From NCBI RefSeq assembly GCF_006345805.1, contig NC_043000.1, forward strand, positions 30,876,001 to 30,940,000: a stretch of 64,000 bases of DNA, given 5' to 3'. Source of the stretch: Octopus sinensis (lineage: Eukaryota). Positions within the stretch are counted from its first letter, which is position 1, and each line of letters begins with the position of its first letter. The position numbers and the translations under genes are program-made. The notes under the pieces were generated by a model. It was not told where the DNA came from. It made no database searches and saw only the letters and a program-made list of their open reading frames with translations. Positions 1-40,290 of this stretch are shown here, in pieces.

Positions 1-129
1 CGGAGTTTCAATGTATCCATGCCCAGGGAAGTAAGGCGTTTAGAATATAGCAAATGCCTGATGGAGGGTATTCTCTTATATAATGTACAGATATAAATAA
101 TGAATTATAGAAAGAAAGACTCATTATAT

Positions 130-390
130 TGAATCTTATTGATAATATTGAGTGAAAATAGGGGGTGCTGCAGTTCCACAGTCCCTATACATGAGCTGCC
201 ACTGATTTCCATGCACACAATATCTGATTCCTCTTGTATCCAGTTTTTCTCATTTGTATATGATCTCAGCACACCTCTTGTGCACTCACACTGGGTACAC
301 CAGACAAAGTTCCTACCGACTCCTTTAGAGCATATCAAGCATGGCCATTTTTTTGATGTCAGCAAAGTCCTGCCTTCCTTCTGTCTTTCT
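130..390 (-). mobile_element. RTE LINE ORF fragment (zinc-finger region of RT)
   Basis: ORF 105-365 KKWPCLICSKGVGRNFVWCTQC matches the RTE copy at 9410-13125. Confidence 0.8.
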
Positions 391-4562: not shown

Positions 4563-5369
4563 TTCAAATCCTGCTGAGATCAACTTGCATTTTCAGAGCC
4601 AATAAAAAATACTGCTGACAGTGAAGCACTGGGATCAATTTAATTAATTAACCAACTCCCCTAAAATTTGAGGTATTGTGCCTATGTTAGACACATACAT
4701 AACTAACTAACCAAATGTCTGGGGGACAATATATATGTAAAAATTAACACTTCCTTCTCCAAGCCTAGGTTCAAAACCGAATCTAAGAATTCTCGGTCGT
4801 CCAAACCACAACGATCAACAAGCGCGGGAAAAGGTTTTCTTTGTCCTATCAAAAACTGATTGATCATCTCCCTTTGACCTCAGCCATGTCAGGCGAAGTT
4901 CAAATGGACAGGAGCTGACCTATTTAGGTACAAACTCTGCTGCAGTATGTCTGTCTTTCTAGCTGCCACGATTATTATAAATACGCTGGTTGACAGAGAC
5001 CAGGGAGGAGAGGAAATCCCTGCAGGCATCGAGGAAGGTCGACCACACAACAGGGTTTGAATGACTGCACAGAATGTTCGAAGTGTCATGATAGACTACT
5101 GTCTCAAATCATCTATGCACACACACAAACATATTCATTCCTGATATATGACTTCCACAAATGTACCCTGTTTATATTTCTAGCAACTCGTAGCAGTTGT
5201 CAACATTTGGTATGTAGTGAAGAATTAAGTGTACCTATAAGAAATCAAGTCCAGTGAATAAATTATTTTTAATTATGGATCAGTTCACGCATTTGTTTAC
5301 TTTAAAGACATACACATTCCATTTGCATCTGTTTTCCTTCATACACACCTAACCACGACATATATGATA

Positions 5370-8300
5370 TAATGAACTTGTATACAATGCTCAGGTGCTC
5401 TACAACTCACCAGGAAAAGTAACCCAAACTGTATGAACAGTACATGGATTATGCACAGGAAGTAAATAGTGAATGGGTCTTCAAAAAAGAAGAAATAGAG
5501 ATGGGTAGCCTTCAGGTGTTCTGTTGGCAAATTTTAGAAAGCATGAAAGTTTTGAAGGATGTCTCAACAGCTAACAAGTGATGCAGGTAGTTTATTCCAT
5601 ACTTCAGCAATTCTGTGCATGAAAAAATGTTTCCAAAAGTGACAGGTGCTGTGATTGCTTTTTGATTTTGTAAACATATCCACCAGTGTTATACATAAGG
5701 AATTCAAAAAGGTGCCCAAGGTTGTCATTATAGAAATGGCGGATAATCTTGTAGGAGTCTACTGTGTAGGTTGTCATATATTGTGTGCATCTCCAGGGAA
5801 GAAAGCTGTTCAGAGCATGGTAGATCCTGATGGTGGATGTTTGTCTGGTCACACATTTCAGAACAGTTCCCAGGAGACTGGTATTCTGAGCAAGATGGGG
5901 GTTCCAGACTGGTAATGCAAACTCTAAGAGTGGATGTACCATAGTCATATACAGCTTTAAATAGATGGCTGGAGAGCAGCTGATAAAGGTCTTATTGAAT
6001 GATGCTAAGACACTCTCAGCTTTCTTGACAATCTTAGAGATGTGGTTTGTTCAATGCGGATCACTCATCATCATCATCGTTTAACGTCCGCTTTCCATGC
6101 TAGCATGGGTTGGACGAATGACTGACGGCTGGCGAACCAGATGGCTGCGCCAGGCTCCAATCTTGATCTGGTAGAGTTTCTACAGCTGGATGCCCTTCCT
6201 AATGCCAACCACTTTGAGAGTGTAGTGGGTGCTTTTTACGTGCCACCAGCATGGGGGCCAGTCAGGCGGCACTGGCAATGACCTCGCTCAAATCTTTTAT
6301 ACATGCCACCGGCATGGATGCCAGTAAGGCAATGCTGGTAATGATCACGCTCGAATGGTGTCTTTTATGTGCCACCGGCACGGAGGCCAGATAGCCGCTC
6401 TGGCAACGATCACTGTTGACAATAATACCTAGGACACATTTACTCACAGACTTCTTAAGATTGGTGCTGTTGAGGAAGCAAGTAAAAGCTGGTTTTTCTT
6501 CCCAAAATGCATGATGAAGCACTTGTCCACAGCCAGATTCAGTTGCCAGGTGGTAATCCATTGTTGCATTGTATCCAGGTCTGATTGCAGGAAAGATCTA
6601 TAGCATATAGGATATTCTTTTTATCTCAGATATGTCATCTGCCTATTTCAATACTAATATATGCGACAAACAACAGGGGTCCAAGAACAGGTCCCTCTGA
6701 TACATGAGATGTCATCTCATAGGGTGAAGAATGATGCCCTAGAACCATGACTACCCCTTTTCAACCAAGAATGAAGAACTTTAACCAGTTTTGCTATGAA
6801 TCATTTGTGTGGCACAGAATTGAATGCTTTAGCAAAGTCAAGATAGATAACATCAGGTGATGTCCTCAAGAAACTTGATGAGTTGGCTATAGCAGCTGGA
6901 GTTGGGGATAAATCCAAATTGTGAAGGGCAAATAAGGCTGTGAGAGCTCAAGAAGGTCCAGAATGTTTCTCTAGCACAGGACCCCATCAGTTTGGCGATG
7001 CGGCTAGTAATACTGACTAGATGGTAGTTAACAGGTGATGTACAATCAACCTTTTTAAATAGGGAATGACACTGACAATTTCCCACTGCTCTGGGGTGAC
7101 ACAGTTATTAAGCAAGAATTGGAAGAAGAATGAAAGCTGGTACAAAAGAAAGAACCCACAACATTTGAGAAGCAGATAAGTAACACTATCAAGACCAGGA
7201 GAGGCATAGTTATGCTTATTCTTGGGGTGGTGTTGCAGCATTGCAGGTGTAAATTTCACAGATGTTATAGAATTTGGTGTCAGAGGTTTTGAAGATGGTA
7301 TATTTGGATTTTCAACAGTAAAGATGCCAACATAGTATTCAGCAATAAGTTCTACACATTCTTTGGGATCATCAGTAATCTGATCTGTGTAGGGATTGCA
7401 AAGAGAGCCCTGCTTTGAATGTACATATTTCCAGAACACTTTGCAGTCAGGGTTAGTTGCTATACGTTATTCAAATTCAGGCACTGCTCATTTTTTATAA
7501 CTTGCTTGAGATAGTTGGGTGATCTATTGTGATTTTTATTCTTCTCTGTTCTATGTAATCTATATTTCTGCTTAGCATCACATTCTTTCTTGGCAAGTTG
7601 AACTGTGGCAATCTCCCAAATTGGGAATTACAACCGTGTTTCATGGTCTGCTACTACAACAGCTCCTTTATAGGATCCAGTTAGCTCAAGCCATCATCAG
7701 GAGGAACCACGTCCAGTTTCGGCCCCTACTCCTCTACCATTTTGACATGGCGGGCCTTCCCCCCACCCATTTCGGAGGTGTCTTCAGCTCTGGTGTTGGG
7801 TGCATGTCTTCTTTCTTCTGTTTCCTGGCCTCTTTGATGTATCGTCAGTGAGTGTCAGCCGGTGACTGACTTGTCAAATTTTTCCCTTTAAATACCTGCC
7901 ACTAGGCTCCAGCAGGCAGCCCCAGCAAGTTGTCACGTGACACTGTCTCACCTTAACTGACCAGTGAAGGCATGTAGTCTTAGCCCACGCATTCTCTAAA
8001 CGACCGTCACCTGTCAGTCAGCGAAGCTGATTTAGTGTCAGCTTGTCTCACCTAGTGATGTTATTTCCCGCCGGCATGTTATGACTTTCAAGCCATTTTC
8101 GGTCTTCCCGCTTCAGCCATATATATTGGTATTTTTTAAGTGGTTCCATGATACTGATGTTTTACGTGGCCCACAATGAACTGAGGATGTTCTGAAGTGC
8201 AGTATTGATATCTGTGGAATTGTAAAATTCAAACCAGTTTGGGCATTGCAACTCAGTATGGCAGCAGTTCTAGTCTGCTTTGTTCCAGTCAAAGCAAGCA

Positions 8301-8770
8301 GTTTGGTGCTGGTGATGCTTCTTGTTTCTGCCCATAAGAGACAGATTGGCAATGGTCATAGCATGATTAGAGTTGCCTGAAGGTTCCTTGGTAGTGACAC
8401 TGATAAATGTTTCAGGAGTAGTGGTAAAGAACAGATCCAAAGAGTTGTTACCATTTTGTGGGGGAGGCGACTACTTGGGACCAACTTCAATCCAGTGCTA
8501 CAACAAAGAAATCATTTGCTCTTTGTGGCCAATGAAAGGTTTTCCAATCGATCTCAGTTCAGATAGATTAGTTGAGGACACCAGCAATAAAAACTGTGGT
8601 GTTAGTAGTGTTATAGGCTGTGATGGAGCTATGTGGTGTTGGTGGAGGGGATGGCAGATGAGGTGGATGGAAGTAAGGCTTGCAGGGGCCGGCGGAAAAG
8701 TGAAAGGGGCATGCATGGGCAGGAAGCTCATGTGGTCAGTTTGGGCAAAGACAGCATAGAGACAAGAAGT
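5370..8770 (-). mobile_element. Degraded CR1-clade LINE (endonuclease, RT, 3'UTR) interrupted by later insertions
   Basis: Minus-strand remnants NNSLDLFFTT...SNH (EN), FWKYV, PGLDS, SQFGF (RT) and HPLLEFALPVWNPHL...NTGG (RT C-terminus). The 3'UTR recurs at about 37245-37490. Confidence 0.8.
6066..6415 (-). repeat. 5'-truncated RTE 3'UTR copy (inside CR1)
   Basis: (CAT)n-TTTAACGTCC...GATGCCCTTCC...GTGCCACCGGCAC matches 12539-13125. Confidence 0.85.
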
Positions 8771-9002
8771 GTTTAATTCGTGAGAGTGACCACTGATTCC
8801 GCTGAGGCCAACAGGTAAGGCCTTTTGTATTTCTTTCTCCCGTTTGCTTCTTTTTTTCTGTTGTCCTTTTCCACCATCACACTACAAAAACATAAATGGC
8901 TATTTTCCTAGATGCAGTTCTGAAGATGTCAAAAAGCTGTGTTTTGATAGTAATTTGGTGGGTGGTAGAAAAATAGCAGCATTAACATGTTTATGCATAT
9001 AT

Positions 9003-9173
9003 GGCGCAGGAGTGGCTGTGTGGTAAGTAGCTTGCTAACCAACCACATGGTTCCGGGTTCAGTCCCACTGCGTGGCATCTTGGGCAAGTGTCTTCTGCTA
9101 TAGCCCCGGGCCGACCAATGCCTTGTGAGTGGATTTGGTAGACGGAAACTGAAAGAAGCCTGTCGTATATATG

Positions 9174-9208
<35 letters not shown>

Positions 9209-9400
9209 TTGTGTGTCTGTGTTTGTCCCCCTAGTATTGCTTGACAACCAATGCTGGTGTGTTCAATTAGCGGTTCGGCAAAAGAGACCGATAGAATATG
9301 TACTGGGCTTACAAAGAATAAGTCCCGGGGTCGATTTGCTCGACTAAAGGCGGTGCTCCAGCATGGCCGCAGTCAAATGACTGAAACAAGTAAAAGAGTA
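9003..9400 (+). mobile_element. tRNA-derived CORE-like SINE with internal (TA/TG)n
   Basis: tRNA-like head (GGCTGTGTGGTAAG...GGTTCAGTCCC) followed by CTTGGGCAAGTGTCTT core. Near-identical inverted copy at 30938-31316. Confidence 0.8.
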
Positions 9401-9409
9401 TGACAAAAG

Positions 9410-12400
9410 AATACTTCTTGTGATTTGTCGAGCTTTAGCCAGAGTCCTCACAGGCAAAGCACATAGATATAAACTCTTCTGGGAAGGTAATAGTGGTGGA
9501 AAAGGCAGTGAGTTGGCAGAATCGTTAGCATGCCGGGCGAAATACGTAGCCGTATTTTGTCTGCCGTTACGTTCTGAGTTCAAATTCCACCGAGGTCGAC
9601 TTTGCCTTTCATCCTTTCGGGGTCGATAAATTAAGTACCAGCTACACACTGGCGTCGATGTAATAGACTTAATCCATTTGTCTGTCCTTGTTTGTCCCCT
9701 CTGTGTTTAGCCCCTTGTGAGTAATAAAGAAATAGGTAATAGTGATGGAATAATGGGTGTGGGCATACTTCTTGCAGAGAAATGGATGGATAAGGTCATA
9801 GAGGTAGTGAGGGTGTACGATAGAGTACTTAAACTCAGGATAGTCTTGCAGAATGGTATAGCTACAATTATCTCTGCCGGGTCACTTTTAAGATATTCTT
9901 CTGCAGGATACCTCAAAGATGAGTGACAATGATCTCATCTTTGTGGCTGGGGATTTTAATGGGCATGTTGGACAGCAACCTGGTATCTTCCATGATGGAC
10001 ATAGGGGTCATGGAGTTGGTACCAGAAATGAAGAGAGAACTAAGCTCCTGGAGTTCTGCGATGCAAATTATTAACCTGCAACACAAACTTCAGGAAGTCA
10101 GCCAGCTACCTGATAACCTATCAATCAGGTGACTCTGCTACCCAGATTGATTTCATTCTCACCAGACAGCGGGATGCATAGTTGCTCTTAAATACAAAGA
10201 CCCTCCCCTAACATAGACTACTCATCAGTGAATTTAGACTCAAGGCCAGAAGGATGCCAAAATGCAGACCAATCAGGAAAAGAAAGTCTTGGAAGCTTAA
10301 GAACCCTTCACATGGTCAGAGATTTAGGGATATCCTTACCAGGAAATTTGATGATAGGGAGGAGCTATAGTCCTGTGATGTAGAAGGCAGCTGGGAACTC
10401 CTGCAAGACAGCTTGCTGAGTGCCATAGACTAAATCTATGGCTGGTGCAAAGTCCCTTCCAGAACTAGTGCAACGTGGTGGTGGAATAATTCTGTAGACA
10501 GAGCCATTAAAGCAAAGAAACAGGCCTGGAAGGCATGGAAGAGTGGCGGTAGTAAGAGAATGTATCCGACAACCAAAAGGGAAGCTAGGAGACATGTATA
10601 TATGGGTAAAGAAGAAATAGAAAACAACAAGTTTGCCAATGTTCAGCAATGTGAGGACCAAAGGACTGAAGTATTTCAGAATGCAAGACAGTGTGTGAGA
10701 GAGAAAATGATGATGTCATAGGAGAGAAATGTGTCCACATGGACGATGGTGCCATTGCGTTTAATAATTCTGCAAAGAAAGAGGCTTGGAGAAGCCATTA
10801 TGAAAAACTGCTGAATGTGGAGAATGAATGGGAGGAGGAGAGTCTGCCAAAGGTTGACCCAATTGAGAGACCAGCTACCCAAATCAATAGCACCCTGGTA
10901 GATATGCAATTAAGGATATGAAGACAGTGAAAGCACCTGGCCCATCAGGAATCACTGCTGAGATGCTTTAAATATCAGGCAGTGTGGGCTATGGTCTTGT
11001 CACCTGCATTGTAAATCAGGTAGTTCATGAAGGGATCACACCCAATGACTGGTGTAGCAGCATCATAATCAGCTGCTACAAAGGTAAAGGTGATGCTTTA
11101 GATAGAAATAATTACAGGGGTATCAAATTATTGGATCAGGTGATGAAAGTTACAGAAAGGGTCATAGCCCAACTAGTTAGGGAGAAAGTTAGTTTACATG
11201 AGATGTAGTTTGGTTTTGTACCAAGCAGAAGCACCACTGATGCTATATTTCTGGTAAGGCAACTGCAAGAGAAATATCTAGCCAAAGATAAACCTCTGTA
11301 CCATTGACATGGAGAAAGCCGTTGATAGGGTCCCCCGATCCCTTATCTGGTGGTCAATGAGGAAACTAGGGATAGATGAATGGTTAGTAAGACCTGTGCA
11401 AGCCATGTACAGGGATGCTGTCAGTAAGGTGAGGGTTGGCAATGAGTACAGTGAAGAATTCTGGATAGAGGTAGGGGTTCACCAAGGTTCAGTCCTCAGC
11501 CCCCTCCTATTTATTATAGTCCTCAAGGCAATAACAGAGGAATTCAGGACTGGATGCCCCTGGGAGCTCCTCTATGCTGACGACCTTGCTCTAATTGCTA
11601 AGTCACTATCAGAACTAAAGGAGAAGTTTCAGATGTGGAAGCAAGGATTAGAATCGAAGGGCCTTACAGTCAACCTAGCTAAAACCAAAGTCCTAATAAG
11701 TAGGAAGGCAGTCAAACCACAAATCCCTTCAGGTAGATGGCTCTGCTCAATCTGTAGAAAAGGCATAGGTAGAAACTTTATAAGATGTACCCAGTGTAAG
11801 CTATGGACACATAAGAGGGGCAGCAATATCAAAGGAAGGCTAACTGGGAAGATAGATTTTGTATGTGGCAGATGCTCAGGAGCAATAAACACTGAAAATG
11901 CTCAGAGACCAACTTCTGCCACATTCCAGGGAGAAAAACTACAAGTAGTTGATAGCTTCCGTTACCTAGGTAACCAAGTCAGTAGTGGGGGAGGGTGCGC
12001 TGAAAGTGTAGCTGCTAGAATAAGAATAGCCTGGGTAAAGTTCAGAGAGCTCCAACCTCTGCTGGTGACAAAGGGCCTCTCGCTCAGAGTAAAAGGTAGA
12101 CTGTATGACACATGTGTATGAACAGCCATGTTACATGGCAGTGAAACATGGGCCGTGACTGCAGAGGATATGTGTAAGCTTGCAAGAAATGAAGCCAGTA
12201 TGCTCCGATGGATGTGTAATGTCAGTGTCCATACCCGACAGAGTGTAAGTACCTTGAGAGAAAAGTTGGACCTAAGAAGCATCAGATGTGGTGTGCAAGA
12301 GAAACGACTGCACTGGTATGGCCATGTGGTGAGAATGGATGTGGATAGCTGTGTGAAAAAGTTCCACACCGTAGCAGTTGAGGGAACCTGTGGAAGAGGT

Positions 12401-13125
12401 AGACCCAGGAAGACCTGGGATGAAGTGATGAAGCATGACCTTCAAACATTGGGCCTCACCGAGGCAATGACTAGTGACTGGGACCTCTGGAAATATGCTG
12501 TGCTTGAGAAGACTCGGCAAGCTGAAATGGGACCATAACCTTGTGGCCTATGCCAGGGGTGTAACCAACCCACTTATGCATACCTTTCCTTCATTGGACA
12601 CTAAACTCTGCTTACGATGACCAGTTGAGGCAAGTGAAATCAAAATCGAAATCAAATTCGATAACTGGCATCTGTGCTAGTGGAGCGCTAAGAGTACCAT
12701 ATGAGCATGATTGTTGCCAGAGCAACAAGCTGGCCTCCGTGCTGGTGGCATGTAAAAAAACACCATTCGAGCATGATTGTTACCTGCGTCGCCTTACTGG
12801 CTCTTGTGCTGGTGGCACGTGAAAAAACATTCAAGCGAGGTCGTTGCCAGTGCCGCTGGACATGATCCTGTGCAGGTACCCAAAAAAAGCACCATTTGAG
12901 CATGACCATTGCCAGTACCACCTGACTGGCCCTCGTGCCGGTGGCACATAAAAGCACCCACTACAATCTCAGAATGGTTGGTGTTAGGAAGGGCATCAAG
13001 CTGTAGAAACTCTACCAGATCAGATTGGAGTCTGGTGCAGCCATCTGGTTTGCCAGTCCTCAGTCAAATCGTCCAACCTATGCTAGCATGGAAAACGGAC
13101 ATTAAATGATAATGATGATGATGAT
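9410..13125 (+). mobile_element. Near full-length RTE-clade LINE (EN + RT + 3'UTR + (GAT)n tail), pseudogenised
   Basis: EN motifs YKLFWEGNS-GVGILL, GDFNGHVG, QIDFIL. RT motifs KGKGD...NYRGIKLL, QFGF, GVHQGSVLSPLLF, LLYADDL, FRYLG. Several stops and frameshifts. 3'UTR 12539-13125 ends in GAT repeats. Confidence 0.93.
9502..9733 (+). mobile_element. Nin-like SINE inserted in the RTE endonuclease
   Basis: 17-bp TSD AGGTAATAGTG(G/A)TGGAA (9485-9501 / 9734-9750). EN reading frame resumes across it. Confidence 0.88.
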
Positions 13126-13129
13126 AACC

Positions 13130-14931
13130 TTTGCTCTTTGAGAAAACGAGTCAGGATCTCACCACAGTCTGACCATTTTCCACGCTTTTTTTGAAGTACT
13201 TATTTGAGAAACTTCAATTTTTCTGTTTGTAAATCTTGTTGGATTCAGTATATACATTATCTGTTTTTTTTTATTTTGAAAAAAAAAAAACTGATGTCTT
13301 GCATTAAACAGTTTTGCATGAAATCATTATCAATTGTTACGGGGTAGTTTGGCAGGTCACTGTATTCTTTGAAATCACTAAATTTGCTTCGTTTCCTGTT
13401 TCTGCTCTCTCTTTTCTTGAAATTCTTGACTACCATGATCATCATCTGCACCAAAAGTGTTAACAGTAGGTTGATTATTGCTAAACAGAGCACTTATGGT
13501 TTGTGCACCATCATTGACCTCACTGGTGCTTGCATAGCTTGTTTCAGTTGCAGGTGATGACAAACTTTTACTTGACATTGTAAAATAGTTTGATAGTTTT
13601 TGACATTTAGAAATTTCATTAGACTGCTTTTCCTTGAGTTAGCATTTCTGGTATCTGCTTAAGTACTTTCTTGAAGACATGGCACCTGTGCCGGTGGTAT
13701 GTGTAAAAGATTCGAGGAAGGTCGTTGCCAGTACTGCCTGACTGGCCCCGTGTCAGTGACACGTAAAAGCACCCACTACACTCTCGGAGTGGTTGGCGTT
13801 AGGAAGGGCATATAGCTGTAGAAACTCTGCCAGATCAAGATTGAAGCCTAGTGCAGCCATCTGGTTCGCCAGCCCTCAGTCATTCGTCCAACCCATGCTA
13901 GCATGGAAAGTGGACGTTAAACGATGATGATGATGATGATTGCTATTCCTCTTCGGGACTAGACCTCTGTGAAAAAAAAAAAAAACTGAGGTAATATTTT
14001 CATTAGCCACAGTAAAACAGAGATCAATCAAAATAAGGGTCTACAACTTAATATATAGTCATAAATGAAGAATTCTTTATTTTGTACAAGGTGATAGTCA
14101 AACAATTTTTAAAGTAGAAAAAAATGCTTTGTAACTGAACAGATTGTAAGTCAAAAATTAGGAGGCAAATCCTTTCATTGGTCATTAAATAATGGTGTCC
14201 CGCTGAGAAAATAAGAATTCTTACCTCTATTGTGCTGATGTTGGAGTAGACATATTTGACAATGGGAGGGGCAAGGCTGAAGTTTCCAAAATAATTCAAG
14301 GAAATAATTGTACTTTTATTTTTTATACTACTCCACACTGGCAGAAATATCAGGTAGAACAGTTTGTAGCTAGACACTGCATGTCTAGACTCTGTGTAGG
14401 AGTACGAGATAACATCCACTAAGACTAGTAACAGCAATCATCATCACCATCATCATTGTCGTTTAACGTCCACTTTCCATGCTAGCATGAGTTGGACAGT
14501 TTGACTGTGGGCTGGCAAACCAGATGGCTGCACCAGGCTCCAGTTTTGATCTGGGTCTACCTCTTCCACAGGTTCTCTCAACCGCTAGGGTGTGGAACTT
14601 TTTTACACAGCTATCCTCATCCATTCCTGCCACATGACCATACCAGCACAGTCGTCTCTCTTGCACACCACATCTGATGCTTCTTAGGTCCAACTTTTTT
14701 CTCAAGGTACTTACACTCTGTCGAATATGCACATTAACATTACACATCCATCAGAGCATGCTGGCTTCATTCCTTGCGAGCTTATGCATGTCCTCAGCAG
14801 TCCGGCATGGCAAAATACAAAAACAAAAAGACTGACAGAATGAAAAAATTAAGTAGCTTCAGAGGATCCCCTTCTCGGATTAGGGGCCCTGAAGCTTAGG
14901 CTTCATTAGTTTTAAAGTAGATCTGCCACTG
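13130..14931 (-). mobile_element. hAT (Tip100/Zaphod-like) remnant: 5' terminus plus N-terminal transposase (TTF-type Zn-finger region), interrupted by RTE 3'UTR copies
   Basis: Terminus CAGTGGCAGATCTAC...CTAATGAAGCCTAAGCTTCAGGGCCCC at 14931-14883. Minus strand from 13680: MSSRKYLSRYQK...QKLSNYF...KKSVENGQTVVRS*LVFSKSK, typical of ZMYM1-like hAT transposases. Confidence 0.65.
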
Positions 14932-14960
14932 ACTGGCAGTATTTATTTGTTGTTTTCTCT

Positions 14961-15685
14961 GATGTAACTACAAAAGAAATGTTGGACTTAATGGCATTAA
15001 AAGAAATAACTCGTAGTATTGACATTAAAAATGTGTTTGAGAGAACCTTAAGAAATGCTGATGTTCCACTGAATAAACTCATAGGTGTTGCACCTGCAAT
15101 GGTGGGAAAAATGTAGGATTAATTGCACTTATGAAAAATGATCCCAGCTTTCCAGAGTTTCTCCCTGTTCATTGTGAACACCTGGCAGCCAGATACTTCA
15201 AGTATGAAGATGTTATGAAATCTGTCCTTGAAATTGACAATTTCATACAATTAAATGGGAAGACTCACCGACAGTTCAGAAAATTTATTGAAGAGCTGGA
15301 GCTTGAAGATAAACCCAGTGATGTCTCTTTCCACTGCATTGTGAGGTGGATGTCAACCAGCAATGTCTTGAGTAGATTTGTTAATCTGTTTGAGTCTATA
15401 ATTACTTTTCTTAAAGAAAAGTAAAGATCCTATCCTCAACTGGAAAATGATGAAGATCTGAGGTTCCTTACTGATATAATGAATCATCTACAAATTCTCA
15501 ACGTAGCACTCCAGGAGAAGAATAAGATTGTTTCTGATCTTACTCAGACAATTTTCAGCTTTCAGAATAAAATAAGAGTTTTTCAAAGAGAAATATTGTC
15601 AAGAAACTTCAGTCATTTTCCCAGTCACAATAGGAGAGTAAATACATTCCCTGATATTGAAATAAAAGACGACAAGATGGAAGAA
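14961..15685 (+). pseudogene. hAT transposase fragment (Charlie/SPIN, GTF2IRD2-like)
   Basis: KEMLDLMALK...APAMVG, VHC-EHLAA, FHCIVRWMSTSNVLSRF, FLTDIMNHLQILNVALQ...FSFQNKIRVF...NFSHFP, with stops and frameshifts. Confidence 0.85.
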
Positions 15686-16430
15686 TCATCATCGTTTAAC
15701 GTCCGCTTTCCATTCATCCAAGGACGAATGCCTGAGGGCTGGCGAACCAGATGGCTGCACCAGGCTTCAGTCTTGATCTGGCAGAGTTTCTACAGCTGGA
15801 TGCCCTTCCTAATGCCAGAGTGTAGTGGGTGCTTTTACGTGCCACCAGCACGGGGCCAATCAGGCGGTACTGGCAAAGACCTCGCTCAAATCTTTTACAC
15901 ATTCCACTGGCACAGGTGCCAGTAAGGCGATGCTGGTATTGATCGCGCTCGAATGGTGTCTTTTACGTGCCACCGGCACGGAGGCCAGATAGCCGCTCTG
16001 GTAACGATCACGCTCGGATGGTGCTCTTAATACCCTACGAGCACAGGGCTCGAGGTGACGCTGGTAACGATCACGCTCGAATGGTACCTTTTAAGTGCCA
16101 CTGACACGGAAGCCGGTTAGCCGCTCTGTCAATGATCATACTCATATGGTGCTCTTGGCACCCTGCTGGCACGGACACCAGTCATCGAATTTGATTTTGA
16201 TTATTGATTTTTGATTACACTTGAGTCAACAGGTCTTTGCAAGCAGAGTTTTAGTGTCCAAAGAAGGAAAAGGTATGCACAAGTGGGCTGGTAATGCCCC
16301 TGGCATAGGCCACGAGATTATGGTCTCAATTGGCTTGCCGGGTCTTCTCACGCACGGCATATTTCCAAAAGTCTCGGTCACTAGTCATTTCCTCGGTGAG
16401 GCCCAAAGGAAATGACCAGTGACCGATTCT
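15685..16430 (-). repeat. Long RTE 3'UTR copy
   Basis: Tail, several GTGCCACCGGCAC sub-repeats and the end of the ORF. Confidence 0.85.
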
Positions 16431-17370
16431 CCCCTATATACATTTATGCTATTTAAAAAAAAAGTTTTCAACCCCACTCCTCACCTAATTGTTTATAATT
16501 TTTAAATATTGGAGAGCCTGAGTAGGTCATTGCAGGAATTTATCCAGAGATTTAAAAAACAGGCATGTAAAAGATAACTTATTTTAATACCATACTTTTC
16601 TTGTAGTTACAGACACACACTTGGTTCAGGAGGAAGGTGGGGTATAAAATTTCTGTTGCTTGTATCCCAGCAATGGATCACACAAGTGTTACTTCCGCAT
16701 TACCCACTCCATAAAATGTGTTTATCGAGAGAAAACTATAGAAAAACATCAATACATGTGAGAGTGATAAAGAAAAAAGAAAGGTGGTCGTTAATGTGCT
16801 AGAAACAACAGCCAAATCTCCTTTAATTCAAACCTTTCCATCTGAAAATTTTTTTTTTTTAACCGAAAAGGCTTCTCCCACGGTTTTTAAATCGGTCCGA
16901 AGGGGGAAGAGAGGTGAAAAACATCATAGATTTTCAAAAATTTGTTTTCATAAAAGATCCCCTCCTTCTAATCATTTCGAAGGTCAAAAATTGGAAAATT
17001 CCCCGTCAAAACGGAGAAAATCCAATTTATGAGAGCGTCCTGATCCGAAACACCGACCAGCAAATTTGAAAGTGCTTTATTATTTCTAGCCGTAAAGTGT
17101 CCTTCGATTTTATATGAACAACGTGAATTTGGCTGTTGTTTCAAGCATGAAGGATGATGATATATGGGGAAAGTACTTATATGGAAAAAATAAATAAATA
17201 AATAAAATAACATACAAACTTAAAAGGAATCCAAACAAAAAATTTTCTGATAAAAATGAAAAAAAAGGAGGGTAGAATTTAAATTTTGAAATACTGATTC
17301 TACCGATTTTTTTTGCATAATCTGAATGTGTTTTTTTTTTTAATCAAAAAGGGGTGGAGTGTGTATGTTA

Positions 17371-17609
17371 GGTACTACTTGAGAACAGTGGTCCCGGTGC
17401 GCGCACTCGCGCATCCGCACTAGCTAGTCGTGACTAGTTGATCCTACGACTACCTAGCAAAGTAAATAAAACACAAAATAAATAATTTTTTTACACAAAG
17501 TAAATAAAACACAAAAACACAAAGTAAGGATCGACTAGTCATGACTAGCTAGCGTGGATGCGCGACTACGTGAGTGCGCGCACCGGAACCACTGCTCTCA
17601 AGTAGTACC
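17371..17609. mobile_element. Mutator-like MITE (long TIRs, 9-bp TSD)
   Basis: About 80-bp imperfect TIRs starting GGTACTACTTGAGA and ending TCTCAAGTAGTACC. Perfect 9-bp TSD TGTATGTTA (17362-17370 / 17610-17618). Confidence 0.82.
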
Positions 17610-18662
17610 TGTATGTTACACCTCTGCTAATTATTCAAGGTGCACTTCGGTCTTTTTAACAGTAAAATGTGACGTAAGGGAGATTTGGCTGTTATTTCTA
17701 GCGGGTCGAGTGACAATGCTGAAACTTGCCGCTTCGATGACTCATAATATCAATGTTATTGTTTAGCTTCTGCTGATGCTTCTTGATCGGGAACATCTGA
17801 GATGTTCCAGCTATGAACACCCTACCTCCTTTAAGGATATTTAAAAAATTCATTATATAATTTGTCCTTAATTTTTTGGCTGCTATTTCTAGCCAGTCGA
17901 CGACCGCAGAGTAGCTTTCTTCGTCTCGGATTGCGCCGCTTAAGTTAATATCGCCAGTAAAAATAAACTTTCGGTAGAAAATTTTACCAATAATTTTTCA
18001 TGGTTGTCAACATACAGCATAGATATTAACGTTTACTACTGTAATCAAAAGTAAATTCATAAATCAGGGCGGCGGGGAAAGGAGTCTTCCTCACTCAACG
18101 TTGCTTTAGAAATAAGCGGGTTTTCTCTTGTTTACGTTTGGGAGGGTGTGTCTGGAAATATCACCAAAGCTGGGTTTTAATTGGTTGAATTATTGAAAGG
18201 AAAATATTTCTGTCACTCACGTAAAAGAGCTATCGGTTCACTTAAAAATATATATTTATTTAAATATAACAGACAGTTGGAAATATATTAGATTTGAGAA
18301 AAAAAATGAAATTATATAAATAAATAGAAACGAGCGTCAAATTAACAACAGTCCTTACTTATCGGATATATTGGTGCAATGCATGCTGGTCGTAATATTA
18401 TCTAGCAGTGATTTCGATACCGGAAGAAGGAAAAATGTGCAATTATATCAATAACTATTGAAAAATCGAGTTGTTTCTTATCCAGTTTTATAATTATGTA
18501 GAAATAATCTATTATCTATCAAAAAATTGTAATGTCAATTTTGGAAACTTGATGAAATGAGGTAAACGCTAGCTCACGTGATCTTCCGATTTTTTGTTTT
18601 TACGTCCGGGCATTTACGCCACTCTCTCCCCCCCTTTATTGGTTAGCATTGTGGGTAACTTC

Positions 18663-19580
18663 AATATGGCGGCACCCATATTGAAGTGGAAGCGAGTTAC
18701 CAATACGGCGGGGCCATGTCCCAGGCCACGACATGGACATCGAGCTGTGGCGATCAAAGATCTTATGGTTGTATTTGGTGGTGGCAACGAAGGAATTGTG
18801 GACGAACTCCACGTCTACAATACAGGTAAGTTGATTGTAGCAGACAAAAAAATGTCGGTGGTGGTGCCAGCCCCCCCTCCCTTCAATCAATGATTTTCCT
18901 GCCTCCCTTTACAAATGATTCCCCCTACAAAATGGCGACTTTTTGTTATTGATGTTGAAGAGTTTTGGCGCCACAGAAATCTTCGATTTCTTGTATTAAT
19001 CTTAAAATTTAAATCCCAATTACACTCTTCTATAGAAAATATAGTCTTGTGTCTATTTAAATGAAATTATTATCTGCACAAGTTTTTTGGTTTTAATTAT
19101 TTTTTTTCAAAGCCATGTCGAATTGGCGTTTGTTTTGCTGTTGGAACCGACGCCAAAGACACCGATGTCGCCGGTTACTCGTCTATTGGCACACTCCTTA
19201 TTTTTGTTGTTGTTAACATTTGTGACTTACACCGATAAACCTGTCAGTTGTTTTCTTGCCCTCATGCCCTCTTTAGTTGGCTTGTTAGTCACGAAGAAGC
19301 TGCTTCTGTTGTCATGTCGCCTTATTTCAACGTGACGAGACGCTACTTTTCCAAGATGGCGGCGCCCAATGATGATGTGCGTTGATTTGTAAATAAACCT
19401 TAAATGCTCGTCCGATCGCCTTATCAAATTTGATTTTCTTTCTGTTTCAACAGTTTACTTCTATACTACTGTGTTAGTTGCCACTGGAGTGTGTGATGAT
19501 TTGATAATGTTAAAGTAAATGTCATTGTTGGCGGCGCCATGAGATTCATCTGCTCTAAACATGGCGACTGACGCCATCAT
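18663..19580 (+). promoter_or_regulatory. Cluster of YY1-type motifs (AANATGGCG)
   Basis: Exact matches at 18663 (AATATGGCGGC), 18929 (AAAATGGCG), 19353 (within CAAGATGGCGGC) and 19558 (AACATGGCG). Weaker CGCCAT cores at about 19535 and 19572. Confidence 0.65.
18666..18825 (+). CDS. HCFC1: Host cell factor 1 orthologue, coding exon 1 (Kelch repeat start)
   Basis: aatATGg start. Encodes [53 protein letters not shown], nearly identical to the HCF-1 N-terminus as recalled. Donor G|GTAAG at 18826, phase 1. Confidence 0.96.
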
Positions 19581-21367
19581 TATTACTATCACTATGGCTT
19601 ATTGTATATATATCTATATATATATACACACACACTCATACATTTTATATATATACACCACTTTGTGTGTATGTCACTCGCTCACTCACACACACACATA
19701 TATATATAGTGTTTAATGCAAACAAACATCTTGTCTCTTATTTTCATCATTATGAATTTTTTTTTAATAGACGGATAAAATTATTTTTGTGGAGAATTGA
19801 TATTTATGATTATAGTTCTTAATGCAATCTATTGCATTGCTTACTGGTAGCTGCACACACACACATTTATAGAAAGAGAGAGTGTGTGTGTGTATTTAAA
19901 TCAGTCCAGTAGTTCTGCGATACTAGTATATTGAACAGTTTATATTGCAGCATTTTTCTCTAACTGTGAATTTCATAAACACATTTTCCCCGAATTTCCT
20001 AAGCGGTTAACATTAAAAAAAAGTGTTTTTTATTTTCTTACACAATCTTCTTTTGAATTCGGCAGTTTTTGCAATCATTTTTGGTAATCGTTTCTGTTTG
20101 TTAAATACGTTTTTTTTTTTTTTTTTTTGATTTCTTAAAGTGTAAATGATTATAAATTTTTTTTTTAATGGTTCAGAAATGTAACTACCTTGTTTATTTA
20201 CTTCGGTTGTGACATTGAGTCATTGGATTTGTCTCCCTTTCTAGTGGAACTCTCCTAATACATTATGCTAATGTTCCTCATTGATTGCCAGGGGATACAT
20301 TTTCTTCAGATCTACACAATGACAATATTTATTGAAAGATTTACCATTTATTACTGTTCCAGTGAGTGCTTAGGTTTGACAGCAAACTTATGACACAAAG
20401 GCGTTACAGACGTAACCATCTTGTCGTTATTTTTAGATTTGTTGTTCTTAGGACTTCCAAATATAATTAGGAAGTTTACATGTTAGAGATGAATTTCAAA
20501 TTGTGACTTGGTTCCAGCCTTGGATGTAAAGTAAAATGTTTACTTTTTTTCATAGATATACAAATATGTATCAGTATATTACTGGTATCTGGTGAACTTT
20601 AACTAGCTGGTTCCTCTTGATTCTTCTCGACAGCAAATAAACTGTTTATAATTGAAACCAGTAAGGAGCCTCTATACGGTTGCCGGCTTGCTAGAAATAG
20701 CAGCCAAATTTCCCCTCAAATCACACTGACGTTTTAAAAATAGGAAAGTCAATGCATAATGTAGTTTAAGATAATAGTTATGTGAAAAAATAGGGATGGT
20801 TATGACTGGAACACCTTTAATCATAGTTTTGTTCGATCAAAACTGATCCGAGCTAAGTAACAGATCCATCTCATTATTGATATTATTTTATTATCCACTT
20901 CCAGTTATATTTAATTTTCAACTACTTCATCTAAAATGAATATAAATCGCAGCACATTACCTTCCATTGCTTGTCGTGTCTCTTGCATGAGATATGCCTT
21001 TTTAATTTTATTTTGAAAGTTCTAACTCAAATGACACAGTGTATCTGATGGTAAAAATTATACTTTTTTTTTTGTTAATGGAATAACGAAACTCCTTCGA
21101 TTTATAATATATTTTTCTTTTATAAGTTAGCTTTGTCTTTCATCTTATGTGATCAATAAAGTACCAGCCAAGTACTACGGTTGATTTAATCGATTAAACC
21201 CCTCCCTCTGAAACTACTGGCCTTGTGCTAAAATTTGAAACCATTAACATACCGGACAAAATATTTAGTGACATTTCGTCCGCCTTTCATCCTCCCGGGA
21301 TCGATGTAATTGACTAGCCTCCTTCCCCAGAACTTCAGGCCTTGTGCCTCTGGTAGAAAGTATTATT

Positions 21368-21850
21368 ATTATTGAGTGAGAGAGCAGTGCATTCCATCAA
21401 AGTGACACTGGAGTAAAATAGACGAAGCTCAGTATACCCATCATTACCATCCGTCTGATAAGGTTACTCCAAGCACATGCAGGTGGGACCCAGTTAGAAT
21501 TTTCTTCAGGTCAAGTAGCCCATCCCACTCAAAAGGTCCCTGAATAAGGTTTGTTTAAGTATGTTGAATGAAACGCCCTTGTTTCCAGAAGTGAATTATT
21601 CAAACTCCAAAGAATTCCTTAATGTATGGCTATGATGCTCCTCTACTTCTGCTCGTGATCAGAGATGCACATATTGTCAGCTACCAAGAGACATGCTCAA
21701 CTGGTTACTGTCAAACAACTGACAAGCAAATCTGTGGTATTGAGCAGAATATTTGTTGTAGACCATCTTTTATACCAAGCCAAAAAAACATGTACATGAT
21801 AACACTTCCAGTCAGTTAAGATCAGAAATCATGAGAGCCAATGACTGGTA
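21368..21850 (-). repeat. Interspersed SINE/LINE-tail-like repeat with (AAT)n tail, family unassigned
   Basis: Minus strand ends ...ACTGCTCTCTCACTCAATAATAATAAT. Recognised as repeat-like from recall only. Confidence 0.4.
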
Positions 21851-24257
21851 CAGTATGGTTAAGGGAAAATACCCCAGGGGAATGTTCTTCATATCAAATA
21901 TAAATATAGTAATCTCCCATGTATTAATTGAGAATTGAAAATTTTTGATTAACAGAGAATATTTAAGTGATTAGTAAACAAAGTCTACCTTCAAGAGTTG
22001 AAAATCTAAAAAGAAAAGTCGTCCAAGTGCAGATTGGAGTGGATATGGAATTCTTGATGCCTGATTGACAGAAAAGGTAGATGTGAGAAAAGAATTACTT
22101 GCAGCTGTATAATTAGATTGTGTAGTCATTAGTATTTCATATGACTATTGAAGAGGAATGCAGCACCTGTGATGATTTTGAGGGTTTCTGTGGTTGGTGG
22201 GAGGCTGTTGTCTTCAATGTGGTATTGTGCTGACGATAGGAATTGAGATGGCAGTGATGGTCGACAGTTTGTAGAATGGGAACCAAAATACCTTCAGATG
22301 TCATCCAGTTACATCTCTACATTTAGAGTTTAAAATCTGGAGTTGATATTTTGCCTGGAATCAATTAAATTGACCTGACTATCATCACTAAACTCGTAAC
22401 CCTGGGCCAAGGCTAAACTGCAATTTTCTCTCTTTATAATGCAATAAAATAATTTAGTTGTATATCATTTTTCCAGTTTCAATTTCTGTTAATTAAATCT
22501 GATTTTAATACACTTTATTATTCAAGTTATTTTGAGGAGAAAATTTTAGGTAATACAAGAATAGTTTTTTATGTAATTCATAATATATTTACTTTTTACA
22601 CTCAGTGGTGATATTTATATATACTGTAGTTAGCATAAGACGCATTCCAATTTCATCAGTACACATTCAGATAAAGTTTTTAGTGTATTAAAATTTATGG
22701 GAAGCCCAGTTTTGCATATAGAACCAGTGTTGCTTCTCTCTCTCTTCAGACTTTTTTGAAAAATGTCTGCCTTTTGAGCTTATGTACCATCAAATATCGT
22801 ACATGTTTACATTTTAAAATAAAACTTCTCAACTTACATGTCACAACTTGATGTATTCATTGTTTATTAGGCCAATCATTATTAAATTCAATTTATACTG
22901 GTGTTTTTGTTGTTGTTTTTCAGTAAAATATATAAATATAGGAATATTTATCCATAGTGAATTTATGTCTGCTTTTTGTGACCACCACCAGCAGTGGTGG
23001 TGGTGGGTTGCGTCATAAATTGCAAGACTAAGGAGCTCCTATGTCATAGAAGGAGAATAGAAGAAAGGAGGATGATTTTGGGTGATGGATTGGAAGGTTA
23101 CAGTATAATAAAAAGGAAGAAACAACATGTCTATCATTATCAAGTAGATGGGGTGATACTCCATCTACTTGAGAGATAAGGATATGATAGTTCTGAGAGG
23201 CCAGAGTGCACCCTCAAGGTAATGTGGAGGGCTAGAAAGCCCATGGTGACAGAAGGATCAAGGTGTAGGGGTTCAAGTTACAAGAGTGAAGAGAGGGAGT
23301 GAGTCATCATCATCATCATTTAACATCCATGTTCTATGCTGGCATGGGTTTAATGATTTGACAGGAGGATCTCATAGCCTCTAGGCTCACATTGAGCTTC
23401 AGCATGATTTCCATGGCTGGATGTCCTTCATAACGACTTTACAGTGCACTGGGTGCTTTTACAAACTTCCAAGACAGGAAGAGTACAGAAGGGTATATTT
23501 TTGAGACCGAGTCAGCAATTTCTGCCAGGTATATAGGGAGGCAAAAGTATAACAGTGAAGCAAGCACAGGTTCTTGCGATAGAGAAGATACATGGATACC
23601 CTGCATTGTATATGGGTAGGTGGGAGTAACTGGAAAGAATGTAGAGCTGGTGATAATGAGAGGCCATACGGCGGTGAGCTGGCAGAATCGTTAGCACGCT
23701 GGGCGAAATGCTTAGTGGTCTGCCACTACACTCTGAGGTCGACTTTGCCTTTCATCCTTTTGGGGTCGATAAATTAAGTACCAGTTATGCACTGGGGTCG
23801 ATGTAATCAACTTAATACCTATATCTGTCCTTGTTTGTCCCCTCTATGTTTAATCCCTTGTGGGTAATAAAGAAATAGGTAATGAGATGCCAGAGCAGGG
23901 ATGGCAGTAGTCATAGGTAGATGGGGTAAGTGGATGGTGGGTAAGAAGAATGAAGGATGGCAGGTAGAAAGTGTTTCAGCTGAGTGAGAATGATGACTGG
24001 CAGAACAAAAATGATAATGTATATAGTAACAAGTTCTGCTTTTATTAATTACAGCAGCCGGCTAATACAGTAGATAGTAGAGTGGTAGGGTACTGAGGAA
24101 TGTGGGTGTAGCTTTAACAAGGACCACCTTTTCTGCACTCAATTCTGAGCCAAGCAGGTAGATTCTATTAAATTATAACCATTATAAAGTGCCAAATTCA
24201 TTACACCAGATGGTTTGGGGTGCCATTTAGTCCTCTTTACATTTTGATTTATTAACA

Positions 24258-40182: not shown

Positions 40183-40290
40183 GTAAGTGTCTTTGTTTTT
40201 TCATTGCAATCATTTCTTTGCATTAAGCATTTTTTATACACATATAATGGATTCTTCTATTATTGAGATAATTATCTCCTAGTCTATTAA

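Follow-up and report, generated by a model that had tools for sequence, protein, structure and literature searches.

A YY1-type motif array at the 5' end of octopus HCF-1 is probably a very old control element

Does a cluster of short motifs over the start codon of an octopus gene record an inherited regulatory link, or chance within a locally unusual base composition? The question arises from an initial annotation of a 64-kb stretch of octopus DNA (here called the window), which had noticed same-strand copies of the YY1-type motif AANATGGCG at the start of an HCF-1 homologue and had likened them to YY1 sites of human HCFC1. The analysis presented here indicates that the array probably did not arise by chance but represents a control element of great age, of a kind already known from human HCFC1 and from intron 1 of the YY1 gene. 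In the literature searched, we found no report on the depth of conservation of an HCF-1 YY1-site array.

The octopus gene and its motif array

By sequence comparison, the gene running from 18666 onward is a homologue of HCF-1, in agreement with the initial annotation. Exon 1 was placed by tblastn with human HCF-1; identity to the human protein is 68% over the first 65 residues, six more Kelch-domain exons lie downstream of intron 1 (39961-46274), and Pfam Kelch_HCF was matched on homologous open reading frames. An exact-product look-up with the open reading frame of exon 1 gave no match, and a Kelch-domain protein search returned no cephalopod or mollusc among the at least 120 matches listed, all of them 686 aa or shorter. 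No convincing open reading frame that might represent a divergent upstream coding exon was found in 15900-18650. The 5' end of the gene comprises:

18666 to 18825, + strand: HCF-1 exon 1, 53 residues plus G, from tblastn with human HCF-1
18826 to 39960, + strand: HCF-1 intron 1, with donor GTAAGT from 18826 and the acceptor read directly in the sequence

Across both strands of the 64-kb window, AANATGGCG occurs in four exact copies, all on the + strand (18663, 18929, 19353 and 19558), which together span 905 bp beginning at the ATG; neither strand holds a further one. The initial annotation had described just this: four same-strand motifs in about 900 bp and no others in the window, one of them a full consensus (CAAGATGGCGGC, at 19352-19363, which is site 3), together with two CGCCAT cores and a first motif overlapping the ATG-GCG of the HCF-1 start. 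The individual sites are:

18663 to 18674, + strand: YY1-type site 1, AATATGGCGGCA, which includes the initiator ATG of HCF-1 at 18666
18929 to 18951, + strand: YY1-type site 2 (class A, first intronic footprint), AAAATGGCGACTTTTTGTTATTG, at intron +107
19352 to 19370, + strand: YY1-type site 3 (class B, full 12-mer consensus), CAAGATGGCGGCGCCCAAT, at intron +531
19558 to 19569, + strand: YY1-type site 4, AACATGGCGACT, at intron +736
19535 to 19540, - strand: weak antisense core CGCCAT, which reads CGTCAT in the related octopus contig L001 and is therefore not conserved
19572 to 19577, - strand: weak antisense core CGCCAT, 6 nt past site 4; in L001 the core is kept and the flank altered

These calls rest on consensus and mismatch scans. 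When at most two mismatches are allowed, the YY1 11-mer matches five times inside 18663-19580, and a SINE-like repeat whose core is CAGATGGCTGC accounts for most matches elsewhere in the window. The array motifs themselves do not appear to be parts of a longer repeat unit, as a repeat search gave only motif-sized families (D2 and D16). ATGTCG, which also occurs in four copies, all on the + strand, and ranks third among hexamers, was considered as a second element and rejected as unconstrained, since three of the four copies are lost in L001. We also asked whether site 3 could belong to a coding first exon, either duplicated or alternative (MAAP...), and rejected this reading: its frame meets a stop after 9 codons, the sole donor-like GT noticed before that stop has a phase incompatible with exon 2, and the likeness of site 3 to the true HCF-1 start is confined to ATGGCGGCnCCCA.

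Conservation from cephalopods to cnidarians

Within cephalopods, the sites outlast the sequence around them. L001 has only 86.5% intron identity to the octopus window, yet all four 12-mers are identical (48 of 48 bases), that is, site 1 and each of sites 2, 3 and 4. The more distant, cephalopod-like contig L002 is alignable in the intron only around site 3, at about 19341-19398, and it too has an identical site 1. No counterpart of site 4 was recognised beyond the two octopus sequences.

The wider comparison is a census of HCF-1 exon-1 loci in 44 lineages, mostly represented by metagenome contigs and not phylogenetically independent of one another. The first 600 nt of intron 1 contain AANATGGCG in 28 sense and 5 antisense copies, falling to a single copy at intron 601-1500, while the 600 nt upstream contain 1 sense and 6 antisense copies. 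Composition-matched controls (59 9-mers, each made of AAN plus a permuted hexamer with one CpG) have a median of 0 sense-strand copies in the same first 600 nt of the same lineages, and none exceeds 2. At least two sites are present in 15 lineages. In 13 lineages, including the leech, a beetle and Nematostella, a sense site falls at intron +21 to +48, a 28-nt band about 200 nt past the ATG. Conversely, 21 of the 44 lineages are missing an exact sense site between the start codon and intron +760; among them are a mayfly, whose gene lacks this intron, and a set of annelid-like loci, and one group of lineages has instead an antisense site at -19. Look-ups of the tick (P0001) and mammalian HCFC2 (P0064) loci found nothing. 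A sense site near the start of intron 1 is present in named taxa of five phyla; positions in the named taxa, counted from the A of the ATG, are:

Helobdella (leech): HCF-1 sites at 0 and +201
Nematostella: HCF-1 sites at +3 and +189
Shark: HCF-1 sites at 0 and +438
Beetle: HCF-1 sites at +188 and +352
Trichoplax: one HCF-1 site at 0
Turtle: 12 copies of AANATGGCG at -1338 to -462, first a block on the minus strand and then one on the plus strand

The sequence around the intronic sites is informative as well. Four lineages (L014, L016, L021 and L030) share the class A pattern of site 2, AAnATGGCGnnnTTTTGTTGT, at intron +39 to +43, and the same four also have the class B block of site 3, AAGATGGCGGCGCCC, at intron +219 to +239; these are the only two conserved blocks in their introns. 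Judged by these shared flanks, octopus sites 2 and 3 are orthologues of the two footprints, with a different cephalopod spacing (+266 and +690, against about +200 and +390 in the other lineages). The motif can also be recovered without being imposed: when the 43 other lineages are anchored on ATGG alone within intron 1..300, the 83 sense occurrences (against 30 antisense) have flanks of A, A and G before the core and C, G, G and C after it, rebuilding AAGATGGCGGC, and the antisense occurrences have no such pattern.

At the start codon, where the motif is partly coding, 21 of 32 lineages encode Ala-2 by GCG, a codon used for 16 of the 82 remaining Ala residues of exon 1 (Fisher P 5e-6). There is thus selection at a synonymous position, and the motif of site 1 is retained beyond coding need.

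Because a start-codon site with one or two early intron-1 sense sites is the usual arrangement across animal phyla, and because octopus sites 2 and 3 are orthologous to the sole conserved intron blocks of related lineages, the array is, on this comparative reading, inherited and not newly arisen. The proposal of the initial annotation that the link is conserved across the protostome-deuterostome split is thus borne out for motif and position, and it extends to Cnidaria; its expectation that the cluster should be present in related species likewise holds, both in L001 and early in intron 1 in other phyla. Two of its statements require amendment. Conservation in non-alignable sequence describes most of the intron, but two of the sites are orthologous footprints with conserved flanks; and the parallel with human HCFC1 stands insofar as the turtle, a stand-in for the human sequence, has its dozen copies, but that cluster lies upstream of the ATG and not in intron 1.

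Further elements accompany the array on its upstream side:

18605 to 18612, + strand: T[CA]CGGG[CT]A-type motif, TCCGGGCA, an associated promoter element outside the YY1 array
18646 to 18657, + strand: reverse complement of a Staf/ZNF143-type core, GCATTGTGGGTA, an associated promoter element

The T[CA]CGGG[CT]A pattern, which was picked after the data were seen, has 17 copies on the + strand at -150..-1 of the ATG, spread over 13 of the 44 lineages, with 1 copy at -600..-151 and none on the + strand early in the intron; the TCCGGGCA motif is kept in L001 and L002. We take the pattern to fit the THAP1 site TxxGGGCA. GCAnnnTGGGWA is present on the + strand at -150..-1 in 9 lineages, and the other zones scanned contain none; GCATTGTGGGTA, identical in L001 and L002, is presumably a Staf/ZNF143 core, judging from the consensus TWCCCAnnnTGC. 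No clear GABP site was seen at the octopus HCF-1 5' end. Finally, in other animals, four contigs that resemble cDNAs have their 5' ends 6-27 nt before the HCF-1 ATG, a distance that would fit the YY1 core-promoter class for site 1. The intronic sites do not fit that class, in which the motif lies 10-30 nt past the start, unless internal start sites exist.

Alternative explanations, mechanism and significance

The reading that we consider likely is a YY1-site array, oriented with transcription, that controls HCF-1 dosage and is older than the cnidarian-bilaterian split. That the cluster instead owes its existence to the sole CpG-undepleted stretch of an AT-rich, CpG-poor region has an almost negligible probability. 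CpG observed/expected is indeed about 0.85-1.2 at 16701-19800, against 0.42 for the window, and the whole-window count of four is not significant, with 1.12 expected and 4 of 100 shuffles reaching four, which is weak alone. An unbiased strand-specific ranking of hexamers in 18601-19600 places ATGGCG first (P 4e-5), but the value becomes 0.17 after Bonferroni correction, so that the hexamer by itself is not significant. Dinucleotide-preserving shuffles of 18601-19600, however, predict 0.045 sites where 4 are seen, and none of 2000 reaches four; four random CpGs of the window would fall within 900 bp or less with a probability of 2e-5; and the remaining CpG-undepleted DNA of the window, some 7 kb, contains no AANATGGCG site. 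The comparison with other CpG-rich octopus promoters that the initial annotation had proposed was made within this window. Full retention of the sites in L001, which is 13.5% diverged, and their excess over the composition-matched controls across lineages contradict the composition account in turn, and we reject chance or a CpG-island by-product as the explanation. It is also very unlikely that invertebrates read the motif with a factor other than YY1. Both intronic classes, A and B, do have extra conserved bases outside the YY1 consensus (TTTTGTTGT and GCGCCCAAT), but the 11-mer that arises without being imposed is the vertebrate YY1 consensus, and Drosophila Pho has the GCCAT core in common and highly conserved zinc fingers. 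A lancelet YY1-like protein is reported to be a trans-acting factor that binds a cis-element in ProtoRAG (PMC7481187).

A more serious alternative, though still a rather unlikely one, is that these are real YY1 sites of a generic housekeeping-promoter grammar, gained repeatedly and independently and not inherited as a link. In Nematostella, constitutive promoters and insulation boundaries show strong enrichment of the YY1 motif, in a study that describes YY1 as metazoan-wide (bioRxiv 10.1101/2025.07.01.662323), and the motif is over-represented just downstream of human transcription starts, normally by 10-30 nt (PMC8384218); the site turnover seen in the census, with about half of the lineages lacking a site and one group using the antisense strand, points the same way. 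Because the motif is general in constitutive promoters, the signal may be due in part to the class of promoter and not to a link peculiar to HCF-1. The narrow intronic band of 13 lineages nevertheless lies off the general human peak (PMC8384218), multiplicity is common, and the class A and B flanks are shared within groups as the only conserved blocks of otherwise unalignable introns. A role at the RNA level, with the motif acting in pre-mRNA, as a protein-binding site or a source of AUG contexts, or with each intronic copy marking alternative initiation just upstream, is improbable. Such a role could accommodate the ATG inside every site, the normal placing of the human motif shortly past the start site, and the strand pattern, since the intronic sense bias, its reversal upstream and the two turtle blocks imply that the motif always points along the likely direction of transcription. 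It is countered by the nine-codon frame of site 3 with its out-of-phase GT, by the agreement of the flanks with the DNA-binding consensus, and by a search in which Rfam matched no family in 14000-24000; moreover, orientation dependence is documented for YY1 sites acting as DNA in the YY1 gene (PMC2743690).

Under the favoured reading, that of an inherited array of YY1 sites, the four motifs are predicted sites for a putative octopus YY1 protein of the Pho/YY1 zinc-finger family, YY1 being metazoan-wide; the window itself contains no YY1 gene. The start-codon site would probably lie 10-30 nt past the transcription start, with three sites in the first 750 nt of intron 1, and the array would most likely set the level of HCF-1 transcription. 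We infer YY1 binding, the sign of its effect and any feedback; as YY1 recruits HCF-1 protein to promoters, the array may plausibly close a feedback loop that stabilises HCF-1 dosage. A bolder version of this proposal, which we regard as possible though doubtful, would make the HCF-1 5' end a self-referential module older than the cnidarian-bilaterian split, composed of sites for HCF-1 recruiters: the THAP-type TxxGGGCA, the Staf/ZNF143-type core, and YY1 sites, both at the start codon and in fixed positions near the beginning of intron 1. Through such a module, HCF-1 would sense and limit its own dosage. If true, this would be among the oldest traceable cis-regulatory architectures of animals, a remnant of which the human intellectual-disability variant would strike.

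Non-coding regulatory elements that can be followed from protostomes to deuterostomes are very rare, and those that reach back to cnidarians are rarer still. In the HCF-1 gene of octopus, leech, beetle, shark and sea anemone, among other taxa, a short motif whose reader is known reappears on one and the same strand, with little change in its distance from a conserved exon boundary. The recurrence makes it directly testable whether links from transcription factor to target can last for more than 600 million years while the surrounding sequence fails to align. The HCFC1 variant c.-970T>C would also gain an evolutionary frame, in which YY1 control of HCF-1 dosage is ancestral and not a vertebrate peculiarity. 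Should YY1 binding fail, the array would still be a well-defined conserved non-coding element in need of explanation.

Relation to known YY1 and HCF-1 systems

The closest known counterpart is human HCFC1 itself. Huang et al. are said to have described, in 2012, one or more YY1-binding elements in the human HCFC1 5' region, with the variant c.-970T>C. The initial annotation had cited a 5'UTR variant that hits an HCFC1 YY1 site, and two sources agree: c.-970T>C sits within a YY1-binding element (PMC11078748), and HCFC1 is repressed by YY1 (PMC5473733). The HCFC1 promoter also serves as a positive control for YY1 ChIP in human cells (PMC4363909). The human element resembles the octopus array in the orthologous gene, the same motif and the promoter-proximal setting. 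It differs in placement if the turtle, the sole amniote examined, is a guide: there the cluster has sites of both orientations some 0.5-1.3 kb before the ATG, in a range that spans the human c.-970 position. The sites of octopus, leech, beetle, sea anemone and shark, by contrast, are sense only and are found over the ATG and in proximal intron 1.

A second counterpart is the YY1 gene, whose intron 1 opens with a conserved, autoregulatory cluster of YY1 sites (Kim, Yu and Kim 2009, PMC2743690). Both have one kind of consensus site at the start of intron 1, conserved in number and orientation. The YY1-gene cluster covers about 100 bp, has mixed orientations, and extends from sea urchin to mammals with its absence from fly pho (PMC2743690), whereas the HCF-1 array covers 0.4-0.9 kb, is all sense, and is found in protostomes and a cnidarian. 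In both systems site mutation alters transcription: in human HCFC1 (PMC11078748, PMC5473733) and in zebrafish YY1 (PMC2743690).

Site 1 by itself recalls a class of YY1 sites at translation starts; octopus site 1 reads AAnATGGCGGC, and its ATG is the start codon. Xi et al. reportedly found, in 2007, YY1 sites past the transcription start that overlap translation starts. Whitfield et al. (2012, PMC3491394) write the YY1 motif as AANATGGN(C/G) and describe sites over translation starts as a repressive class. That class is known from human promoters with one site each, whereas the octopus gene adds intronic copies, and octopus site 1 has T at motif position 4, where the repressive human sites have G.

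HCF-1 is also known as a partner of YY1 at other genes. It co-occupies promoters with YY1, which binds HCF-1 (Michaud et al. 2013, PMC3668359), and the CpG-island promoters occupied by HCF-1 in human cells bear ZNF143/THAP11, GABP and YY1 motifs (PMC3668359). With its YY1 motif, upstream Staf/ZNF143-like core and TxxGGGCA THAP-like motif, the HCF-1 5' end itself looks like a typical HCF-1 target promoter. A more distant likeness is to the Polycomb response elements of Drosophila, which also have several sites for the YY1 orthologue Pho inside about 1 kb. Those elements act as silencers of developmental genes and have further motifs beside their Pho sites, whereas the HCF-1 cluster lies at the 5' end of a housekeeping or ubiquitous co-regulator gene, in a CpG-undepleted block.

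Setting and clustering of the motif

HCF-1 exons were located by tblastn with a human HCF-1 query, which recovered exon 1, six further Kelch-domain exons at 39961-46274 and a weaker match at 52268-52417. Intron 1 spans about 21.1 kb, from the GTAAGT donor (first base 18826) to the AG acceptor at 39959-39960. Window G+C is 40%, and a CpG block at 16701-19800 has an observed/expected ratio of about 0.85-1.2, against 0.42 window-wide. The upstream half (1-16000) is retroelement debris; among named sequences, those closest to its reverse-transcriptase open reading frame come from Octopus vulgaris (79%) and O. bimaculoides (71%).

Features of the window
18666-18825, plus strand: HCF-1 exon 1 (tblastn)
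19535-19540, minus strand: antisense CGCCAT core
19572-19577, minus strand: antisense CGCCAT core
11309-12538: reverse-transcriptase/PHD-type open reading frame
14463-14747: fragment related to the 11309-12538 open reading frame
15131-15925: open reading frames
6138, 13037, 13853, 14521, 15748, 25151, 37974, 38278, 44463: copies of a SINE-like repeat

The YY1-type motif AANATGGCG occurs at 18663 (site 1, over the HCF-1 start codon), 18929, 19353 and 19558 (sites 2-4, at intron +107, +531 and +736), always on the plus strand, and has no further match on either strand of the 64-kb window. The initial annotation had listed these four same-strand copies, one of them a full consensus, had noticed no other exact match, and had added two CGCCAT cores; a pattern scan bore this out, the full consensus being the 12-mer CAAGATGGCGGC at 19352-19363. 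Six of the window's 11 ATGGCG hexamers fall inside 18666-19577.

It is the clustering of the sites that is impressive, not their whole-window count (4 observed versus 1.12 expected, reached by 4 of 100 shuffles). When 18601-19600 is shuffled with its dinucleotide content preserved, 0.045 sites are expected and a count of four is never attained in 2000 shuffles; three other local backgrounds leave this result unchanged. The window has 1083 CpGs, and a random choice of four would span 900 bp or less with P = 2e-5; no site occurs in the roughly 7 kb of other window sequence with CpG observed/expected of at least 0.85. When the strand-specific hexamers of the same kilobase are ranked without bias, ATGGCG heads the list, but at a Bonferroni-corrected P of 0.17 the hexamer alone is not callable; specificity comes from the added AA at -3 and -2, which is present in all four copies and belongs to the published YY1 consensus.

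Other repeated elements were observed as well. ATGTCG, the third most over-represented hexamer of the kilobase, occurs four times on the plus strand (18852, 19115, 19165, 19314); L001, a close octopus-like relative, keeps just one of them, so the hexamer is probably non-functional. A dispersed repeat of SINE type (...TTTCCATGCTAGCATGGGTTGGACG...CAGATGGCTGCACCAGGCTCCA...) has nine or more copies across both strands, some of them inside HCF-1 introns, and is the source of most two-mismatch YY1 11-mer matches outside the cluster. Right after site 4, at 19600-19900, (TA)n and (CA/TG)n microsatellites with inverted copies lie along the 3' border of the block in which CpG is not depleted.

Persistence of position and strand across lineages

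L001 is 86.6% identical to the window across 2 kb and 86.5% identical in the intron, and all four sense 12-mers are unchanged (48/48 bases), while one weak antisense core is lost; under neutral decay at 13.5% per base, the probability of keeping the 36 intronic motif bases is about 0.005. The more distant set L002-L007, which includes the cephalopod-like L002, has the same exon-1 protein as the window and retains the start-codon site; outside exon 1, alignment is limited to a 60-bp piece of the intron surrounding site 3 (AACATGGCGGCGCCCAATAATG versus AAGATGGCGGCGCCCAATGATG). When a protein collection was queried with the exon-1 open reading frame, hundreds of exon-1 fragments predicted on genomic contigs came up; where these run on into intron 1, they often contain KMAA, QDGG or RWRP, the three reading frames of AAGATGGCGGC.

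One metagenome-contig scan yielded 80 loci with HCF-1 exon 1, making 88 with L001-L007 and the window. The intron lies at the same place in 79 of these, which form 38 clusters mutually non-aligning at 85% over 300 bp; it is lacking in a mayfly locus. With the named genomes below and that of a turtle, the comparison covered 44 lineages, which are phylogenetically non-independent. Across them, AANATGGCG has 28 sense and 5 antisense copies in the first 600 nt of intron 1, one copy in intron 601-1500, and 1 sense and 6 antisense copies in the 600 nt 5' of the ATG. Control 9-mers (59, each AAN plus a permuted hexamer with one CpG) have at most two sense copies each in the same sequence, with a median of 0. 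A sense site lies inside the intron's first 100 nt in 13/44 lineages; between the start codon and intron +760, 23 have at least one and 15 at least two, leaving about half without any. The motif also emerges from the 43 lineages other than octopus when ATGG is the sole anchor over intron 1..300: the flanks of the 83 sense anchors rebuild AAGATGGCGGC, and those of the 30 antisense anchors show no pattern.

Sense sites in named genomes, relative to the A of the ATG
Leech (Helobdella): 0, +201
Nematostella: +3, +189
Shark HCF-1-like: 0, +438
Beetle: +188, +352
Trichoplax: 0 only

Sorted by position, intronic sites fall into classes A and B. In 13 lineages class A falls between intron +21 and +48; it reads AAnATGGCGnnnTTTTGTTGT in four metagenome loci (L014, L016, L021, L030), and octopus site 2 (AAAATGGCGACTTTTTGTTATTG) carries the same extension. 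For class B, which reads AAGATGGCGGCGCCC, the position is +219 to +239 in these four loci, +360 in L002 and +531 in octopus (site 3). Aligned over the first 330 nt of the intron, the four conserve the class A and B blocks and no others. They are probably nearer relatives of octopus, perhaps molluscs, because they share with it GCATTGTGGGTAA immediately 5' of the ATG. Coral-type loci and Nematostella share flanks of their own; across groups, persistence is limited to the YY1-type core and its position.

Spacing and orientation vary. The same four loci have sense sites about 180-200 bp apart (0, ~200, ~390; in two also ~580-630), roughly one nucleosome repeat, whereas octopus spacing differs (0, 266, 690, 895). 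In one related metagenome group (L008, L020, L024, L026, L029), the start reads ATGGCA or ATGGCT, a sense YY1-type site is absent, and all five carry antisense (A/C)ACAATGGCGTC at -19 to -21, which looks like site turnover with flipped orientation.

The start codon and neighbouring motifs

It had been cautioned that site 1 is partly coding-constrained. This is largely answered by the Ala-2 codon, which is GCG in 21/32 lineages versus 16/82 other exon-1 alanines (Fisher P 5e-6), although Kozak context remains a confounder for the AA that precedes the ATG. Four intron-less, cDNA-like contigs (L031, L050, L062, L083) start just 6-27 nt 5' of the ATG, three with AANATGGCG at the start and L050 with ATAATGGCG, which suggests that HCF-1 5'UTRs are very short. 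Such a 5'UTR would place site 1 at the position of the human YY1 core-promoter motif, as given in PMC3491394 and PMC8384218. A perfect 12-bp inverted repeat (18658-18687; ACTTCAATATGG / CCATATTGAAGT, loop CGGCAC) encloses the start codon, and the RNA of 18645-18700 has a folding energy of -19.2 kcal/mol (z -3.2). L001 and L002 have the same sequence there and L014, L021 and L030 do not, which makes the repeat look cephalopod-specific; it might mask the AUG within an RNA hairpin or serve as a palindrome in the DNA.

Two upstream motifs, both picked post hoc after data inspection, accompany the start. T[CA]CGGG[CT]A (18605-18612) lies within -150..-1 of the ATG in 13/44 lineages, on the plus strand only, with 17 copies there versus 1 in -600..-151 and up to three in tandem in annelid-like L008, L020 and L024; we take it to fit the THAP1 site TxxGGGCA. 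GCAnnnTGGGWA (18646-18657) occurs in nine lineages, among them octopus, L002, L014, L016, L021 and L030, always in the same orientation and no farther than 150 nt from the ATG, with a looser form in coral-type loci; it is presumably the reverse complement of a Staf/ZNF143-type core, resembling the ZNF143/THAP11 site. THAP1 and ZNF143/THAP11 are other HCF-1 recruiters. Downstream, Nematostella and three coral-type loci (L089, L058, L071, L077; intron +38 to +54) have an E2F-like TT[CG]GCGCC 17-33 nt after their first intronic YY1-type site. The octopus counterpart, TTTTGGCGCC at 18962-18971, lies 26 nt after site 2 and is kept in L001; in intron 1..200 such motifs occur in seven lineages, at 0.84/kb versus 0.07-0.16/kb upstream and deep in the intron.

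Regulatory readings and the vertebrate comparison

The best-supported reading is that an array of predicted YY1 sites, oriented with transcription, tunes HCF-1 output; HCF-1 protein may then feed back on its own gene through it. In published work, YY1 binds HCF-1, which is found on 76% of YY1-bound promoters (PMC3668359), the HCFC1 promoter serves as a YY1 ChIP positive control (PMC4363909), and a repressive class of YY1 sites overlaps translation starts (PMC3491394). YY1 is likewise described as an HCFC1 repressor, loss of one YY1 element raising HCFC1 (PMC11078748, PMC5473733), and the YY1 gene's own intron 1 opens with a conserved cluster of YY1 sites that is sensitive to orientation (PMC2743690).

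The main rival holds that HCF-1 is merely one of the constitutive promoters using YY1 motifs, a class described in Nematostella (bioRxiv 10.1101/2025.07.01.662323). The narrow position band, shared flanks and multiplicity speak for inheritance, but about half of the lineages lack the sites. An RNA-level role or internal transcription starts would likewise account for the strand rule. As to the tuning array, precedents are already known in YY1 control of human HCFC1 and in conserved YY1-site clusters where intron 1 starts; full-text literature searches turned up neither YY1 sites in invertebrate HCF-1 genes nor conservation of this kind. The part worth pursuing is the position and strand conserved across phyla.

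The initial annotation had cited a YY1 link and disease variant for HCFC1, which reports of c.-970T>C confirm (PMC11078748, PMC5473733). Its further proposal, conservation across the protostome-deuterostome split, is supported for motif and position by leech, beetle and shark and extends to the cnidarian Nematostella, but not to turtle, whose HCF-1-like intron has no AANATGGCG copies. The turtle locus (L093, Pelodiscus) instead carries 12 copies at -1338 to -462 of the ATG, in a region of 80% G+C; the first seven are 6/7 antisense and the last five 4/5 sense, as would be expected for divergent transcription with a start near -900. This cluster upstream of the ATG is unlike the start-codon and intron sites of octopus, leech and Nematostella, and the human variant, placed in a YY1-binding element of HCFC1 by PMC11078748, lies within its distance range.
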